Below are positions 14,774 through 19,812 of a stretch of 64,000 nucleotides of DNA, one piece after another (position 1 is the first letter of the stretch; each line of letters opens with the position of its first letter). Made by a program: the position numbers and the translations under genes. The stretch lies in sequence record OQ708376.1. The stretch is one strand, 5' to 3'. Under the pieces are notes generated by a model. That model was not told the DNA's origin, ran no database searches, and saw nothing but the letters and a program-made list of their open reading frames with translations.

Positions 14774-15397
14774 ATGAGTAGTATGATTCGTGAATGGTCT
14801 TCATTCAATGATTCTAAAGTTGTTTTGGAACATCGTGATAATGGATTTGGTGGGCGTGACTGCTATCTTCGTGGTATTGCTATTCAAGCCGACCAACGAA
14901 ATTTGAACGAGAGAATTTACCCTTTATCTGAAATTACAAGGGCAGTAAATAACATGAACCAGCGTTTAGCTAAAGGTGAAAGCATTCTTGTTGAATGTGA
15001 CCATCCAGAAACACTAACTATTAACCTAGACCGTGTAGCAGCAATGATTACTAAGGTTTGGATGGAAGGTGCTAATGGTATGGCAGAAATCAAACTACTT
15101 GATACTGCACATGGTCAGAATATCCGTAAAATGCTAGAGGCTGGTGTAAAACTTGGTGTAAGTTCTCGCGGTTCCGGTAACGTTGATTATAATGGAATAG
15201 TTTCTGATTTTGAAATTATCACTATTGATATTGTTGCTCAACCTAGTGCTCCAGAAGCATACCCAACAGCGGTATTTGAATCTCTGATGAGTAAGTACGG
15301 ATCACCTTGTAATAGTTCTAAAAAAATCACTGAATCTAAAAAAGTAAATAATTTAGATTCTGAAATATACGATTTTTTCAAGAAATTAAAAGGTTAA
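14774..15397 (+). CDS. gp21: Prohead maturation protease
   Basis: ECDHP, GVKLGVSSRGSG, DIVAQPSAPEA (His/Ser/Asp motifs). Confidence 0.93.
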   Translation: MSSMIREWSSFNDSKVVLEHRDNGFGGRDCYLRGIAIQADQRNLNERIYPLSEITRAVNNMNQRLAKGESILVECDHPETLTINLDRVAAMITKVWMEGANGMAEIKLLDTAHGQNIRKMLEAGVKLGVSSRGSGNVDYNGIVSDFEIITIDIVAQPSAPEAYPTAVFESLMSKYGSPCNSSKKITESKKVNNLDSEIYDFFKKLKG

Positions 15398-15408
15398 CAT
15401 TTTAAAAA

Positions 15409-15416
15409 TATAAATA
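15409..15416 (+). promoter_or_regulatory. Late promoter TATAAATA
   Basis: Exact consensus upstream of the scaffold gene. Confidence 0.75.
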
Positions 15417-15463
15417 TCTGTATGTTGAAGTACAGATATTTCAGTACTTAAAGGAGAGAACGA

Positions 15464-16579
15464 ATGTCTAAATTAGAAAAGCTTCTAAAAGAATCATCTC
15501 TTTCTGATGAGGCAAAACAGCTAATTCAGGAAGCATGGAATGAAGAAAAGAATACACTAGCCGCAGAGATGCGTGAAGAAATGAAAGGCCGTTATCAGCA
15601 AGATTTGGCTGAACTAACCGAAGGTTTGAACACGATGGTTACTCAAGTCATTGCTGAAGAAATGGGTGCTGTATATGAAGAGAAAAAACGTCTCGTTGAA
15701 GATCGTGTAACTCTACGTAAAACACTAAGCAATTTCTCTGCGTTTTCAAACTCTGTTTTGGCTGAAGAAGTTAAACAAATGCGTAAAGAACGTAAGCATC
15801 TTCATGAATGCATGGGTAAATTCGTTAATTTTTCTAACGGTATCCTAGCAGAAGAGCTAAAAGAATTCCACACTGAAAAACGCCAACTAGTAGAAACTCG
15901 CGTTAAACTACTTGCTGAAGGTTCACGTCAAATTGCTGAAGCTCGTAATAACTTCATCAAACGTACATCTGAAAGTGCTGCTAAATATATTGCAGAAACC
16001 ACTCAGAAGAATCTATATGCGTTGAAACAAGATCTAGTGGAAGCAAAACAAAATATGTTTGGTCGTAAAATCTTTGAAGCATTTGCTCAAGAGTTTAATG
16101 TCAAACAATTTAATGAAAACTCATTGCTACGTTCCCTAACTGAATCAATTAAATCTAAAGAAGATGAAATTGCTCAAGTTAAGCAAGAACTACATGAAAC
16201 TGCTAATGCCGTTAAAGCTGCTAAAACCAAACTACGTATTATGGAAGATGCACAAGCACGTAATGCGATTATGTCTGAACTAGTAAAACCACTAACTGCA
16301 CAGCAAAAACAAATTATGGAATCCCTTCTAGCTACTTCACCTACTGAAAAGCTTAAAGAAGATTTCAGCAAGTACCATAAGTCAGTACTTAACGGTACTA
16401 AAGTAAATGAATCTGCTACCACTCGTCAAGCAGTTCAGTCTTCCGCTAAGAAAACTCTTGCAGAAGGTAAAGTAATCACTGGCAACCGTCAGGCTATTGT
16501 TGAAAGCGAAGAAATGACCGCTGACGATATGGCATTCCTAAAAGAACTCGATGTTCTTTCAGGTATCAATAAAAAATAA
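15464..16579 (+). CDS. gp22: Prohead core scaffolding protein
   Basis: Long coiled coil between protease and capsid genes; LSDEAKQLIQEAW motif. Confidence 0.85.
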   Translation: MSKLEKLLKESSLSDEAKQLIQEAWNEEKNTLAAEMREEMKGRYQQDLAELTEGLNTMVTQVIAEEMGAVYEEKKRLVEDRVTLRKTLSNFSAFSNSVLAEEVKQMRKERKHLHECMGKFVNFSNGILAEELKEFHTEKRQLVETRVKLLAEGSRQIAEARNNFIKRTSESAAKYIAETTQKNLYALKQDLVEAKQNMFGRKIFEAFAQEFNVKQFNENSLLRSLTESIKSKEDEIAQVKQELHETANAVKAAKTKLRIMEDAQARNAIMSELVKPLTAQQKQIMESLLATSPTEKLKEDFSKYHKSVLNGTKVNESATTRQAVQSSAKKTLAEGKVITGNRQAIVESEEMTADDMAFLKELDVLSGINKK

Positions 16580-16617
16580 ACATTTTAAAGCATTTTAATA
16601 ATCAAATTTTTCAGTTC

Positions 16618-16625
16618 TATAAATA
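16618..16625 (+). promoter_or_regulatory. Late promoter TATAAATA
   Basis: Exact consensus 46 nt upstream of the capsid ATG. Confidence 0.8.
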
Positions 16626-16670
16626 ATATCATACTGAAAAACGAATATAACATCTTTAAGGAGATATATA

Positions 16671-17846
16671 ATGTCACAACTACTAAATGAATCCAAATGG
16701 GTAGCAGTAAAAGAGAAACTAGTTGAAGGTCTACAGGGTACTCGTAAGTCTGTAATGGAAACTGTTCTTGATAACCATCGTAAAGTTATGCTAACTGAAT
16801 CCGCAACTTCTGGTGCAACTACCGCTGGTAACATCGCTACTCTAAACAAAGTGATTCTACCAATTATGCGTCGTGTAATGCCAACCGTTATTGCTAACGA
16901 AATCATCGGTGTTCAACCAATGACTGGTCCAGTTGGTCAGATCCACACCCTACGTGTGCAATATGCTGATAACGCACCTGGTGTTATCGCTGGTGAAGAA
17001 ATGCTTTCTCCATACAAAATCGCTAAATCCTACTCTGGTGATCTAAATGCGGATAATAGCAACCCACAAGCTGCTCCTACTAGCCAACTAGAAGGTACTA
17101 TGGGTCGTCGCGTTAACATCCGTATTCTACGTGAAACTGTTGAAGCGAAATCTCGTCGTCTATCTGCACGTTGGACTGTTGAATCTGCACAAGATGCTCA
17201 ATCCCAACATGGTGTTGACGTTGAAGCAGAACTAATGGCTGCAATCGCTCAAGAAGTTACCGTAGAAATCGACCAAGAGCTACTAAGCCGTCTACGTGCA
17301 CTACCTGGTGCTGCTGCTGTAACTTATGACCAATCTAAAGTTACTGGTGTTGCAACCTTCGTTGGTGATGAGCACGCTGCTCTAGCAACTCTAATTAACC
17401 GTCAAGCAAACGAAGTTGCTCGTCGTACTAAGCGTGGTGCTGCAAACTGGGCTGTTGTTTCCCCAACTGCACTAACCATTCTACAATCTGCTACTACTTC
17501 TAGCTTTGCACGTACCACTGAAGGTACTTTCGAAGCACCAACTAACGTTAAGTTTGTAGGTACTCTAAACAGCACTATGCGTATTTTTGTTGATACTTAT
17601 GCAAGTGATGCAGAAGATATTCTAATTGGTTATAAAGGTAATGCAGAAACTGATGCTGGTGTGTTCTATTGCCCATACATCCCACTAATGGCTTCCGGTA
17701 CTGTAATGGACCCTAACACTGGGGAATTGGTCACAACTTTCTTAACCAGGTATGGTTATGTTCAGTTGACCGATAGCACCAGTTCACTAGGTAACGCTGC
17801 GGACTACTACAGCAAAATCGCTATCAAAAACGTTACTTTCATGTAA
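16671..17846 (+). CDS. gp23: Major capsid protein
   Basis: IIGVQPMTGPVGQIHTLR, AKSRRLSARWT, EIDQELL, FYCPYIPL, TRYG. Confidence 0.96.
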   Translation: MSQLLNESKWVAVKEKLVEGLQGTRKSVMETVLDNHRKVMLTESATSGATTAGNIATLNKVILPIMRRVMPTVIANEIIGVQPMTGPVGQIHTLRVQYADNAPGVIAGEEMLSPYKIAKSYSGDLNADNSNPQAAPTSQLEGTMGRRVNIRILRETVEAKSRRLSARWTVESAQDAQSQHGVDVEAELMAAIAQEVTVEIDQELLSRLRALPGAAAVTYDQSKVTGVATFVGDEHAALATLINRQANEVARRTKRGAANWAVVSPTALTILQSATTSSFARTTEGTFEAPTNVKFVGTLNSTMRIFVDTYASDAEDILIGYKGNAETDAGVFYCPYIPLMASGTVMDPNTGELVTTFLTRYGYVQLTDSTSSLGNAADYYSKIAIKNVTFM

Positions 17847-17890
17847 TTGTAATAGATTTAAAAGATTTAATCAAAAAAAATAAAAACAAT

Positions 17891-17918
17891 AGGGACTCTT
17901 CGGAGTCCCTTTTCTTTT
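17891..17918 (+). terminator. Intrinsic terminator
   Basis: AGGGACTC-TTCG-GAGTCCCT followed by a T tract. Confidence 0.9.
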
Positions 17919-17931
17919 TATTAAAAAACCC

Positions 17932-17960
17932 TTGACACAATGTTCTGGAATGTATATAAT
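17932..17960 (+). promoter_or_regulatory. Canonical sigma70 promoter TTGACA-N17-TATAAT
   Basis: Perfect consensus upstream of the endonuclease gene. Confidence 0.85.
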
Positions 17961-17992
17961 ACGCACATACACGAAAATAAAGAGACAAAATT

Positions 17993-19090
17993 ATGCCAAA
18001 CGTAAGTATCACCAAAGAAGAGTTTATCAGCAAAATGACTGCTAAGTATGGTGAATTTGATTTCAGTACTTTAGTATTCAAAGCAAGTAAGACAACAGTG
18101 AAATGTAACAAGTGTGGAAAAGAAAACACCAAACCTGCACTTCGTCACATTGCATGTACATGTGCATCATGTTATTCAAACATGTCACAACGTTCAAACA
18201 ACGACACATTCATCAGTACTGTAGAAACTAAATTTGGAAAAGATAAATTCAAATTTGATAAACTAAATTACACTAATGCTATATCAAAAGTAACAATTTT
18301 CTGCACAGATGAAGATCACAATGATTACTTTGAAATTACACCCAATAAATTTCTTTCTGGTAAAGGATGCCCCGTATGTAATAAAAATGAAGCATACAGT
18401 ACTGAAGAGTTCAAAGAAAAAGTAAAAGATAATTATGGTGATTTATTGGATTTAACTAACACGGTGTATGTAAATCAAAAAACTAAAGTAACTGTGTATT
18501 GTAACGCAGGTAATCATGAATGGACAGTTGATCCAAAAACTTTACTTGTTGGTAAGACTGGATGTGGTACATGCTCCGGTAAAGGCGGTCGAAGTACTGA
18601 ACGTTTCATTGAACTTGTGTCGCCTATCCATAACCATAAGTATGATTATAGCTTGGTGGATTACAAGACTAGTGATGAACATGTGGATATTATTTGTCCT
18701 GAACATGGTGTCTTTAAACAAATACCCAAATCTCATATGGCAGGAAGAGGATGTCCATCATGTGGTGAGTATGGTTATCAACCATCAAAGCCTGGATATT
18801 TCTATGTACAAAAACTATCTAATAACTCAAAAGTCGTTTACAAATACGGAATTACCGGAGACATGAAGAGACGAATTCATGAACAAAGTCGCAATTCTGA
18901 GTTCGAGCATGAAGTACTGGTAGAACGTTACTTTGAGGATGGTAATAAACCATTATTATTGGAAAAGTTTATCAAGCAATACATTGAAAGTGGTGTTGTA
19001 AGTACTGAAGAGTTACCGTCAGGATTTACTGAAACATTTGATGCTAAGTATCTTGAAAGTGTTTTAGAAATTGTAAATACTTTTAAGTAA
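17993..19090 (+). mobile_element. Free-standing homing endonuclease: four Cys/His zinc-binding repeats (DUF723/CapR-like) plus C-terminal GIY-YIG-like domain
   Basis: Repeats F...YG..D.S...Y......V...C...H........L.G.GCP.C; C-terminal GYFYV...YKYGITG..KRR. Confidence 0.75.
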
Positions 19091-19113
19091 ACAATCTAAA
19101 GGAGTTGACACGG

Positions 19114-19464
19114 ATGTTAACTGTATACAAATTTAACAAAGAAGAGTACTTAAAGAGTCAGTACTCAAATATAGAAATAAATGTTCCTTATGGTACGTTA
19201 GTTGGATATGATGAAGCCACTGAAACATTGTATTATAATGATGATAGATTGGATTATAGTTTAGATTCTTTTATAGAAGATATACTAAACACACATACTG
19301 AAGATATGTTATATGAAGAATACATAGATCATTATAGGGAACGTATGTCACAATTACACTCAGACGCTCCAGTACTAAACATTACACAAGAACCTTCTGA
19401 ATTTCAGCCCCATAATCCTTTTCAACGTTTAATAGATATTGGTTTGAAATTCACTATTAGTTGA
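19114..19464 (+). CDS. Hypothetical protein
   Basis: GGAG SD 9 nt before ATG 19114. Confidence 0.6.
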   Translation: MLTVYKFNKEEYLKSQYSNIEINVPYGTLVGYDEATETLYYNDDRLDYSLDSFIEDILNTHTEDMLYEEYIDHYRERMSQLHSDAPVLNITQEPSEFQPHNPFQRLIDIGLKFTIS

Positions 19465-19503
19465 TAGATAAATATCTCCATATTAATGATGGAGATTGAA
19501 TCT

Positions 19504-19812
19504 ATGTCACAGATATGTTATGTTATAATAAATTCTGCATGGCCTGAGTATGTTAAAATTGGTTTTACTTCAAAATCAGAAATGACAGAACGTCTAAGAA
19601 CGTATCAGACTGCTACACCATTTCGTGACTTTGAAGTATATCATGAAGTTCATTTTGATGATGCACGTTTGGCTGAAAAAGAAATACATAAAAGGCTTAA
19701 GCAGATGAATGCAACTAGACAACCCAATACCGAGTGGTTTAAAATGTCTAAAAAGATAGCAGCCAACATTATTGATTCCGTATGGGATGATATGGATAAC
19801 GACTTGCTATAG
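19504..19812 (+). CDS. T5orf172-type GIY-YIG domain protein
   Basis: CYVIIN...YVKIGFT...RL..YQT...EKEIH...EWF. Confidence 0.75.
   Translation: MSQICYVIINSAWPEYVKIGFTSKSEMTERLRTYQTATPFRDFEVYHEVHFDDARLAEKEIHKRLKQMNATRQPNTEWFKMSKKIAANIIDSVWDDMDNDLL

Follow-up and report, generated by a model that had tools for sequence, protein, structure and literature searches.

The stretch analysed here (the window) comprises 64,000 nucleotides (nt) of sequence record OQ708376.1 and matches Escherichia phage vB_EcoM_CRJP21 (CRJP21) at 100% identity; this jumbo phage of 366 kb is a member of the genus Asteriusvirus (121Q/PBECO4 group). This report concerns its major capsid protein gene, a short patch of unusual codons near the 3' end of that gene, and the putative homing endonuclease gene that follows; all features described are on the + strand. 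The capsid gene (16671..17846, 391 codons) is T4 gp23-like (Pfam Gp23, E=1.3e-89) and shows strong codon bias. Its orthologues are annotated as major capsid or head protein in relatives, and the genes on its 5' side encode a prohead protease and a scaffold protein. The patch, termed P2, covers codons 351-374 (17721..17792) and is recognised by its private codons, its diversity among relatives and its tracking of the endonuclease. P2 is followed by a conserved spacer of 128 nt with low diversity (17793..17920), in which the capsid gene ends with its final 18 codons and stop codon and an intrinsic terminator follows (stem at 17891-17910 plus a T run, found by sequence scan). Next comes a mobile endonuclease cassette (17921..19104), identified by junction comparison as polymorphic for presence and absence, which includes a free-standing putative homing endonuclease gene of 365 amino acids (aa) (17993..19090; PHROG 681 'endonuclease', E=9e-77). 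The right flank of the insertion site is a conserved gene encoding a protein of 116 aa (19114..19464; PHROG 15724). GenBank OQ708376 annotates the capsid gene as 'hypothetical protein' and the endonuclease gene as 'DNA polymerase II', and both names look wrong.

The original prediction, made from the letters of CRJP21 alone, placed a recoded patch at 17721-17786. This interval is in frame (codons 351-372); the real end lies at about 17792, because codons 373 and 374 vary among relatives too. As predicted, GGG, GTC, ACA, TTA, AGG and both TTG codons have no other occurrence in the 391-codon gene, whereas TCA, also listed as unique, has a second copy at codon 2 (16674-16676). The contrast with the rest of the gene was likewise borne out: Gly is encoded by GGT at 24/24 positions, Arg by CGT (19) and CGC (1), and Leu by CTA (25) and CTT (2). 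The TRYG motif is kept in P2, and the endonuclease gene starts at 17993, which is 207 nt past 17786 and agrees with the predicted distance of about 200 nt. A shuffle test was carried out by permuting synonymous codons among positions of the same amino acid (5000 shuffles, segments of 22 codons). Seven codons private to one 22-codon segment were reached in 1/5000 shuffles, with a mean shuffle maximum of 2.4. These results confirm a local, purely synonymous recoding of P2.

The variation of P2 was analysed in a capsid-region sample of 29 GenBank phages, 80 IMG/VR loci and nine Logan/ENA/NCBI contigs. IMG/VR held no close Asteriusvirus (best 92% aa identity) and was the source of outgroup loci. 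Escherichia phage CMSTMSU (L021, an 'UNVERIFIED_ORG' record) was left out of the statistics; several frameshifts, probably sequencing errors, break its capsid and scaffold genes. Except for CMSTMSU and for SD-2_S15, which has a 22-nt deletion, the capsid genes of close relatives are all 1176 nt long, and no intron or intein was present at P2 in any capsid gene checked. All Asteriusvirus phages sampled have the same 24 residues at 17721-17792, and the protein is invariant here across about 40 relatives. The most diverse 22-codon segment of the capsid gene is 17727-17792, with 0.65 differences per codon against 0.14 elsewhere. A peak of synonymous divergence had been expected at the patch in carriers of the endonuclease only; the peak is there, but insert-less Asteriusvirus phages are recoded too. 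All eight six-fold-degenerate positions in P2 (four Leu, one Arg, three Ser) are polymorphic between codon families, compared with 3/67 such positions outside P2, two of which lie in a second patch described below. The hypergeometric probability of this contrast is about 1e-8, for sites that are not phylogenetically independent. A switch between the two Ser codon families (TCN and AGY) takes two base changes by way of a non-Ser intermediate; therefore the Ser switches point to selected nucleotide change or templated replacement, not to drift. More than 20 P2 haplotypes were found among relatives, and no naive P2 sequence was retained among the sampled Asteriusvirus phages. The hypervariability of P2 is thus genus-wide and not peculiar to CRJP21.

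P2 is uncoupled from the capsid backbone. Capsid genes with only 0-6 differences over 1078 nt reach up to 27/72 differences in P2. For example, the capsid gene of CRJP21 differs from that of UB at no position outside P2 and at six inside, from E9.1 at two outside and 16 inside, and from PBECO4 at four outside (plus nine in the second patch, P1) and 18 inside. Phages fENko-Kae01 (Klebsiella, L107) and PHA46 (Salmonella, L106) differ at 4/1176 nt, all of them in P2 at codons 356-358; fENko-Kae01 has an endonuclease of type B (see below) and PHA46 has no insert. The opposite pattern was also found: the capsid genes of CRJP21 and Turkey3 show 61 differences outside P2 and a single one inside, and identical P2 sequences occur on backbones at least 60 nt apart in the pairs JP4/WPEC3, BF17/A4 and slurp01/WPEC5. 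Between 121Q and BF17, P2 differs at 1/72 nt, the capsid gene by 6.3% and the endonuclease region by 17%; between slurp01 and WPEC5 the values are 0/72, 6.0% and 9.4%. One P2 haplotype can therefore be better conserved than either of its flanks.

The CRJP21 sequence is recombinant: its backbone is like that of UB, without a single difference over 15171-17726, whereas its patch and endonuclease are Turkey3-like (98% protein identity). Mosaic comparison revealed a 5' sub-block, P2a (17727..17756), which is exchanged independently and holds the sole six differences between CRJP21 and UB over 15171-18011 (about 2.8 kb). The P2a of CRJP21 is shared by Turkey3, slurp01, WPEC5 and the endonuclease-less fEgEco12, and the four differences between fENko-Kae01 and PHA46 lie within this sub-block. 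A 3' sub-block, P2b (17760..17792), was defined by its haplotype distribution and is specific to close alleles of the 365-aa endonuclease (type A). Its haplotype ACC GAT AGC ACC AGT TCA CTA was found in 10/12 close type-A carriers and in locus L110, and in none of the carriers of type B, C, D or E inserts and none of the insert-less phages. An AGR codon at Arg360 is present in 12/12 close type-A carriers and in 4/5 type-B carriers; PBECO4 and SD-15_S21 have CGT/CGG there, with the 3' block unrecoded. P2 is a composite, the 5' block of which moves alone. No ectopic donor copy of P2 and no endonuclease paralogue was found within the window.

The insertion site was defined by comparison with empty-site phages, in which the 116-aa gene directly follows the capsid gene and similarity to CRJP21 stops at about 17920. 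The cassette is absent from PBECO4, SD-15_S21, SD-2_S15 and fEgEco12; 12 close relatives have it, and the others have a different insert in its place. Intergenic nuclease genes between conserved genes, present or absent in close relatives, are the arrangement expected of a free-standing homing system. The cassette includes its own promoter, a perfect TTGACA-17-TATAAT (17932..17960; 12/12 consensus match). The inserts were classified as type A (361-369 aa, including the CRJP21 endonuclease), type B (300-307 aa, which corresponds to type A minus the first module), type C (328-332 aa), type D (406 aa) and type E (about 480-550 aa; UE-S1, ph0011; PHROG 3339), an HNH gene that is unrelated to the rest. 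Types A-D belong to one family with 22-98% identity. The site behind the capsid terminator (17921-19104 in the window; L018, L020, L022, L023, L003) is a hot spot, with at least five insert types across the genus. The 54 nt after P2 show 0-2 differences between backbones that are 6% diverged. Repeated conversion that homogenises the spacer would fit this near-invariance, as would a need for the spacer as a homology arm. The mosaic of CRJP21, with its UB-like backbone, Turkey3-like patch and endonuclease, and homogenised spacer, would fit a non-reciprocal transfer with co-conversion of flanking markers.

Mantel tests were performed over 22 carriers, with related genomes counted as independent. 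The P2 distance was correlated with the endonuclease protein distance (r=0.62, p=1e-4), and remained so when the capsid backbone was controlled (r=0.60, p=1e-4); with the endonuclease controlled, no correlation between P2 and the backbone was left (r=0.00, p=0.45). By segments, 17627-17720 gave r=0.78 with the backbone and 0.32 with the endonuclease, 17721-17756 gave 0.19 and 0.65, and 17757-17792 gave 0.10 and 0.51. The allegiance thus changes sharply from backbone to endonuclease at the 5' edge of P2 (about 17721). When the test was repeated by zinc-finger module and by block, every module correlated with every block, and a one-to-one mapping of modules to sub-blocks was therefore dropped. 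Type B, which lacks both the first module and the 3' recoding, is suggestive of some correspondence between modules and blocks.

The outgroups separate the recoding from the protein sequence. Insert-less sister genera (Erwinia phage Hallingskeid and IMG/VR loci L025, L027, L030, L032 and L033) use ordinary codons, with 0-1 private codons, for a peptide that is identical or almost so. Relative to the consensus of these outgroups, 23/72 nt are changed in the P2 of CRJP21, compared with 5/72 in the adjacent 72-nt flank. Independent carriers of more diverged alleles (L110, L113-L118; 64-79% identity) have their own recoded patches with 3-8 private codons each. Contrary to the proposal, recoding within Asteriusvirus is not confined to carriers: the endonuclease-less phages fEgEco12 and PBECO4 have a P2 identical to that of carriers. 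The capsid gene of fEgEco12 equals that of the type-B carrier WPEC5, including GGG, TTG, GTC, ACA and AGG; PBECO4 has GGG, ACA and the second TTG, and its capsid gene is identical to that of the carrier SHEFM2K. Most of the codons that are unique within the CRJP21 capsid gene are consequently not private to carriers. The intergenic regions of empty sites contained no cassette remnants, and an origin of these sites as scars of endonuclease deletion was ruled out on this ground. The recoded Asteriusvirus phages that lack an endonuclease are best read as resistant empty sites. The idea that the patch is an immunised target was partly supported, in that the changes are synonymous, tied to the endonuclease allele and absent from insert-less sister genera, and had to be given up as regards a restriction to carriers.

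A second variable patch, P1 (17601..17626, codons 311-318), appeared as a secondary diversity peak and is unrecoded in CRJP21. Recoded P1 was found in all three Asteriusvirus type-C carriers (SHEFM2K, JNE01, TH47), and also in PBECO4 and SD-15_S21, the backbones of which are identical to that of SHEFM2K outside P1 and P2. In the outgroup, the type-C carrier L024 has a P1 that was recoded independently, as judged by comparison with L025. The P1 distance is correlated with the endonuclease distance (r=0.58), and the loci noted as tracking the type-C clade are L104, L022, L105, L001, L016 and L024. Two endonuclease allele clades thus appear to have left two different footprints in one capsid gene. 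Such clade-specific footprints are what target-site immunity predicts, and linkage alone is an unlikely source of them. The unrecoded P1 of CRJP21 predicts that this phage would be sensitive to the type-C clade. The 22-nt deletion of Salmonella phage SD-2_S15 (L017) corresponds to 17603-17624 of the window; it takes out exactly P1 and shifts the reading frame of the capsid gene, for which two coding sequences are annotated. It could be an assembly artefact of mixed haplotypes or a real lesion of break repair.

The start of the endonuclease gene lies 147 nt beyond the stop codon of the capsid gene, so that it adjoins an essential gene. Its product is composed of four zinc-ribbon modules of CapR/DUF4379/DUF723 type, recognised by CxxC motifs (17993-18184, 18185-18385, 18386-18583 and 18584-18772), and a putative C-terminal nuclease domain of T5orf172 type (18773-19087), assigned by PHROG 681 coverage, the structural model and a Pfam match below the cut-off. 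The repeats are about 60-65 aa long, have paired Cys residues that are invariant in the family alignment, and were modelled as separate zinc-ribbon-like units. DUF4379 was matched in Pfam with 26.4 bits (cut-off 24.5) and CapR below the cut-off; homologues carry PF05265/PF14311, and some carry PF10544/PF13455. The AlphaFold model has a mean confidence (predicted local distance difference test, pLDDT) of 85 over its full length, rising to 94 in the C-terminal domain, and a full-length predicted template modelling (pTM) score of 0.39. The full-length Foldseek search was uninformative because the chain is multi-domain with this low pTM. In the modelled C-terminal domain the order is strand-strand-helix-strand-helix-helix, which is typical of GIY-YIG-like domains. 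A PDB sequence search and NCBIfam returned nothing for the endonuclease, and Pfam gave no GIY-YIG match at E<=0.01. An identity as a Seg-type GIY-YIG enzyme was rejected, since this match is missing and the domain order is reversed, with zinc fingers N-terminal and the nuclease C-terminal. The protein has 1834 database relatives, and tblastn linked about 960 phage records, including ICP1 tcgB, a 'putative homing endonuclease' (32% over residues 212-364, E=2e-9). All type-A alleles tested are intact (18/18). In these 18 alleles the ratio of nonsynonymous to synonymous substitution rates is 0.08 for the nuclease domain, compared with 0.17-0.21 for modules 3 and 4. Purifying selection thus acts on the endonuclease genes, with a rate of evolution in the DNA-binding modules that is about double that in the nuclease domain. 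Prediction of the neighbour as an active homing endonuclease is credible, with a fold that is only partly verified.

A small stand-alone T5orf172-domain protein is encoded outside the mobile cassette (19486..19812; PHROG 15085). Its orthologues have precomputed PF10544/PF13455 hits, and profile comparison with the endonuclease gave a modest match (E=0.0017 over 65 columns). This T5orf172/MUG113-domain protein (102-108 aa) has no DNA-binding modules, occurs in all relatives including other genera, and may be a domesticated nuclease domain. It was ruled out as driver of the recoding, as it is present in insert-less genera with unrecoded P2.

Taken together, P2 is probably the region that is recognised, and cut in or near, by capsid-adjacent endonucleases of the T5orf172/CapR type, and its odd codons would be immunising synonymous changes that block the endonuclease. 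For CRJP21 it is similarly likely that the endonuclease recognises and cuts 17721-17792 in its ordinary-codon form and spares its own allele. A contested region of target and immunity, with several rival endonuclease alleles and with resistant empty-site genomes, would fit the data. In the mechanism proposed, the endonuclease would be expressed from its own promoter and break the genome of a co-infecting relative with a still-recognised patch. The carrier genome would then serve as the repair template, and the patch, the 128-nt spacer and the endonuclease gene would be copied in as one segment. The capsid protein is fixed here, so that escape would proceed by synonymous sites only; selection would therefore exploit codon-family switches at every Leu, Arg and Ser position, which alter two or three bases. 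As several diverged endonuclease alleles would compete for one insertion site, repeated rewriting might have made P2 hypervariable and spread rare codons throughout the genus. Short repair tracts, or crossovers in the spacer, might split the patch from the gene and leave resistant genomes without it.

Several observations weigh against this interpretation. Endonuclease-less Asteriusvirus phages share their P2 with carriers, and carriers cannot be told apart by any single base. Three unrelated P2 haplotypes occur among the type-C carriers, and EC.P1 (type B) and UE-S1 (with the unrelated HNH insert) have the same P2. Moreover, P2 is only about 130 nt from the insertion point, so that linkage alone gives some correlation between P2 and the endonuclease, and the genomes in the Mantel tests are related. 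As to the enzyme, the Pfam T5orf172 match reaches 17.1 bits, below the 20-bit cut-off, and the best Foldseek match in the PDB is 1zg2 (UPF0213, a GIY-YIG-family protein), with only E=0.4 and a TM-score of 0.45-0.49.

One rival explanation is passive hitch-hiking, in which P2 would be the usual end of recombination tracts, the odd codons would be those of a divergent donor, and the real cut would be elsewhere, for example in the invariant spacer. The change from backbone to endonuclease allegiance at P2 and the many small tracts of the mosaic maps agree with it, and nuclease genes have been reported at boundaries of genetic exchange (PMC10448857). However, the 32% divergence is limited to 72 nt, whereas whole capsid genes differ by 12-14% between genera and the next 54 nt by 0-4%. 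Codon-family switches at all eight positions without any amino-acid change would be unexplained, as would a P2 haplotype better conserved than both flanks; hitch-hiking is thus considered unlikely. Mutagenesis associated with breaks predicts the same localisation, the same link to the endonuclease and also the rare codons: cutting and error-prone repair would raise the local mutation rate, and purifying selection would leave the synonymous changes, with no selection for resistance. It is the harder of these two to exclude. Nevertheless, all three Ser positions have switched in an invariant protein, where each switch needs two changes through a non-Ser intermediate, and discrete haplotypes are unchanged across backbones at least 60 nt apart, which looks like selected or converted sequence and not like ongoing scatter; as the full account of P2, mutagenesis is quite improbable.

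A function unrelated to the endonuclease would be more remote still and is given very little probability. P2 might, for instance, slow translation with rare codons shortly before the C-terminus, form a structure in the mRNA, contain an internal promoter, or serve to evade a host defence that targets sequence. The RNA of the CRJP21 patch folds somewhat better than shuffled sequences (z=-2.3), and rare codons occur at P2 throughout the genus. Yet the fold of the 19-haplotype alignment, with two invariant pairs and -0.55 kcal/mol, showed no conserved structure or covariation, which ruled out a conserved mRNA structure. Which rare codons are used is not conserved, the same protein sequence is encoded by ordinary codons in sister genera, and the variation of P2 follows the endonuclease allele. 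No internal promoter or terminator was found in P2, the sole strong promoter being that of the cassette (17932-17960), and Rfam gave no meaningful match, only one irrelevant match below the threshold in the terminator region.

Within the preferred reading of P2 as an endonuclease target with immunising codons, a more far-reaching version is possible but rather doubtful. P2, together with P1, might be a hypervariable 'lock' in a multi-allelic arms race, in which modular zinc-finger arrays shift so as to attack the immunised patches of rivals, and synonymous immunity cassettes of about 30-70 nt move alone by micro-conversion. If this were true, the comparison of more than 20 haplotypes with the three- and four-module alleles could reveal a DNA-recognition code of the CapR modules. 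A hint of such a code is that type B, which is one module short, also has its 3' block unrecoded.

The recoding explains the mosaicism of Asteriusvirus capsid genes at P2, and it warns against the use of this segment for phylogeny or typing. More generally, one genome is enough to reveal the scar that a selfish nuclease can leave in the codon usage of a highly expressed essential gene, and such scars could guide computational searches for endonuclease targets. In the searchable literature, no mapped target was found for any member of the T5orf172/CapR family; the Asteriusvirus genomes point to a candidate target of about 70 bp with a natural series of presumably sensitive and resistant alleles, which makes specificity directly testable. 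No prior description of the P2 recoding was found in the searchable literature, including the Sharanji and fEgEco12 genome papers, and an immunity footprint appears not to have been described there for this family.

In the T4 systems, the carriers' own alleles reportedly differ in sequence and are resistant. Free-standing phage endonucleases cut conserved neighbour genes hundreds of bp from their own gene (PMC2988022). SegF/gene 56, SegG/gene 32, SegE/uvsW and MobE/nrdB of T4 are examples of intronless homing, with localised marker exclusion and co-conversion of flanking markers (PMC2988022). The CRJP21 locus resembles them in its polymorphic nuclease gene between conserved genes and, presumably, in a target within the neighbouring conserved gene. 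It differs in the enzyme, which is of the T5orf172 type with zinc-ribbon repeats and not a Seg GIY-YIG or Mob HNH enzyme, and in its jumbo-phage host. It also differs in the number of competing alleles, since one Asteriusvirus site has no fewer than five types of insert and over 20 haplotypes of the patch, and in its target, which is inferred and not mapped. The original prediction had drawn a parallel with T4 segD. This holds for the position, since segD, between genes 23 and 24, is likewise a free-standing endonuclease gene beside a T4-like major capsid gene; it does not extend further, as segD is of Seg GIY-YIG type and antisense, has no promoter of its own, and its target is unknown (PMC2988022), whereas the CRJP21 gene is co-oriented with the capsid gene, has a consensus promoter and belongs to another family. 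The closest likeness is to the T5orf172/CapR homing endonucleases of ICP1 and other phages and their derivatives CapR and Odn (Barth, Dunham and Seed 2023, PMC10448857), which have the same architecture. That report mentions neither the word 'synonymous' nor phages of the 121Q/PBECO4 type. Members of this family are enriched beside capsid, terminase and reductase genes, with 31% in capsid neighbourhoods (PMC10448857). The CRJP21 endonuclease is capsid-adjacent in the same way, and, as in the family of Barth et al. 2023, the number of modules varies by recombination, with four in type A and three in type B.

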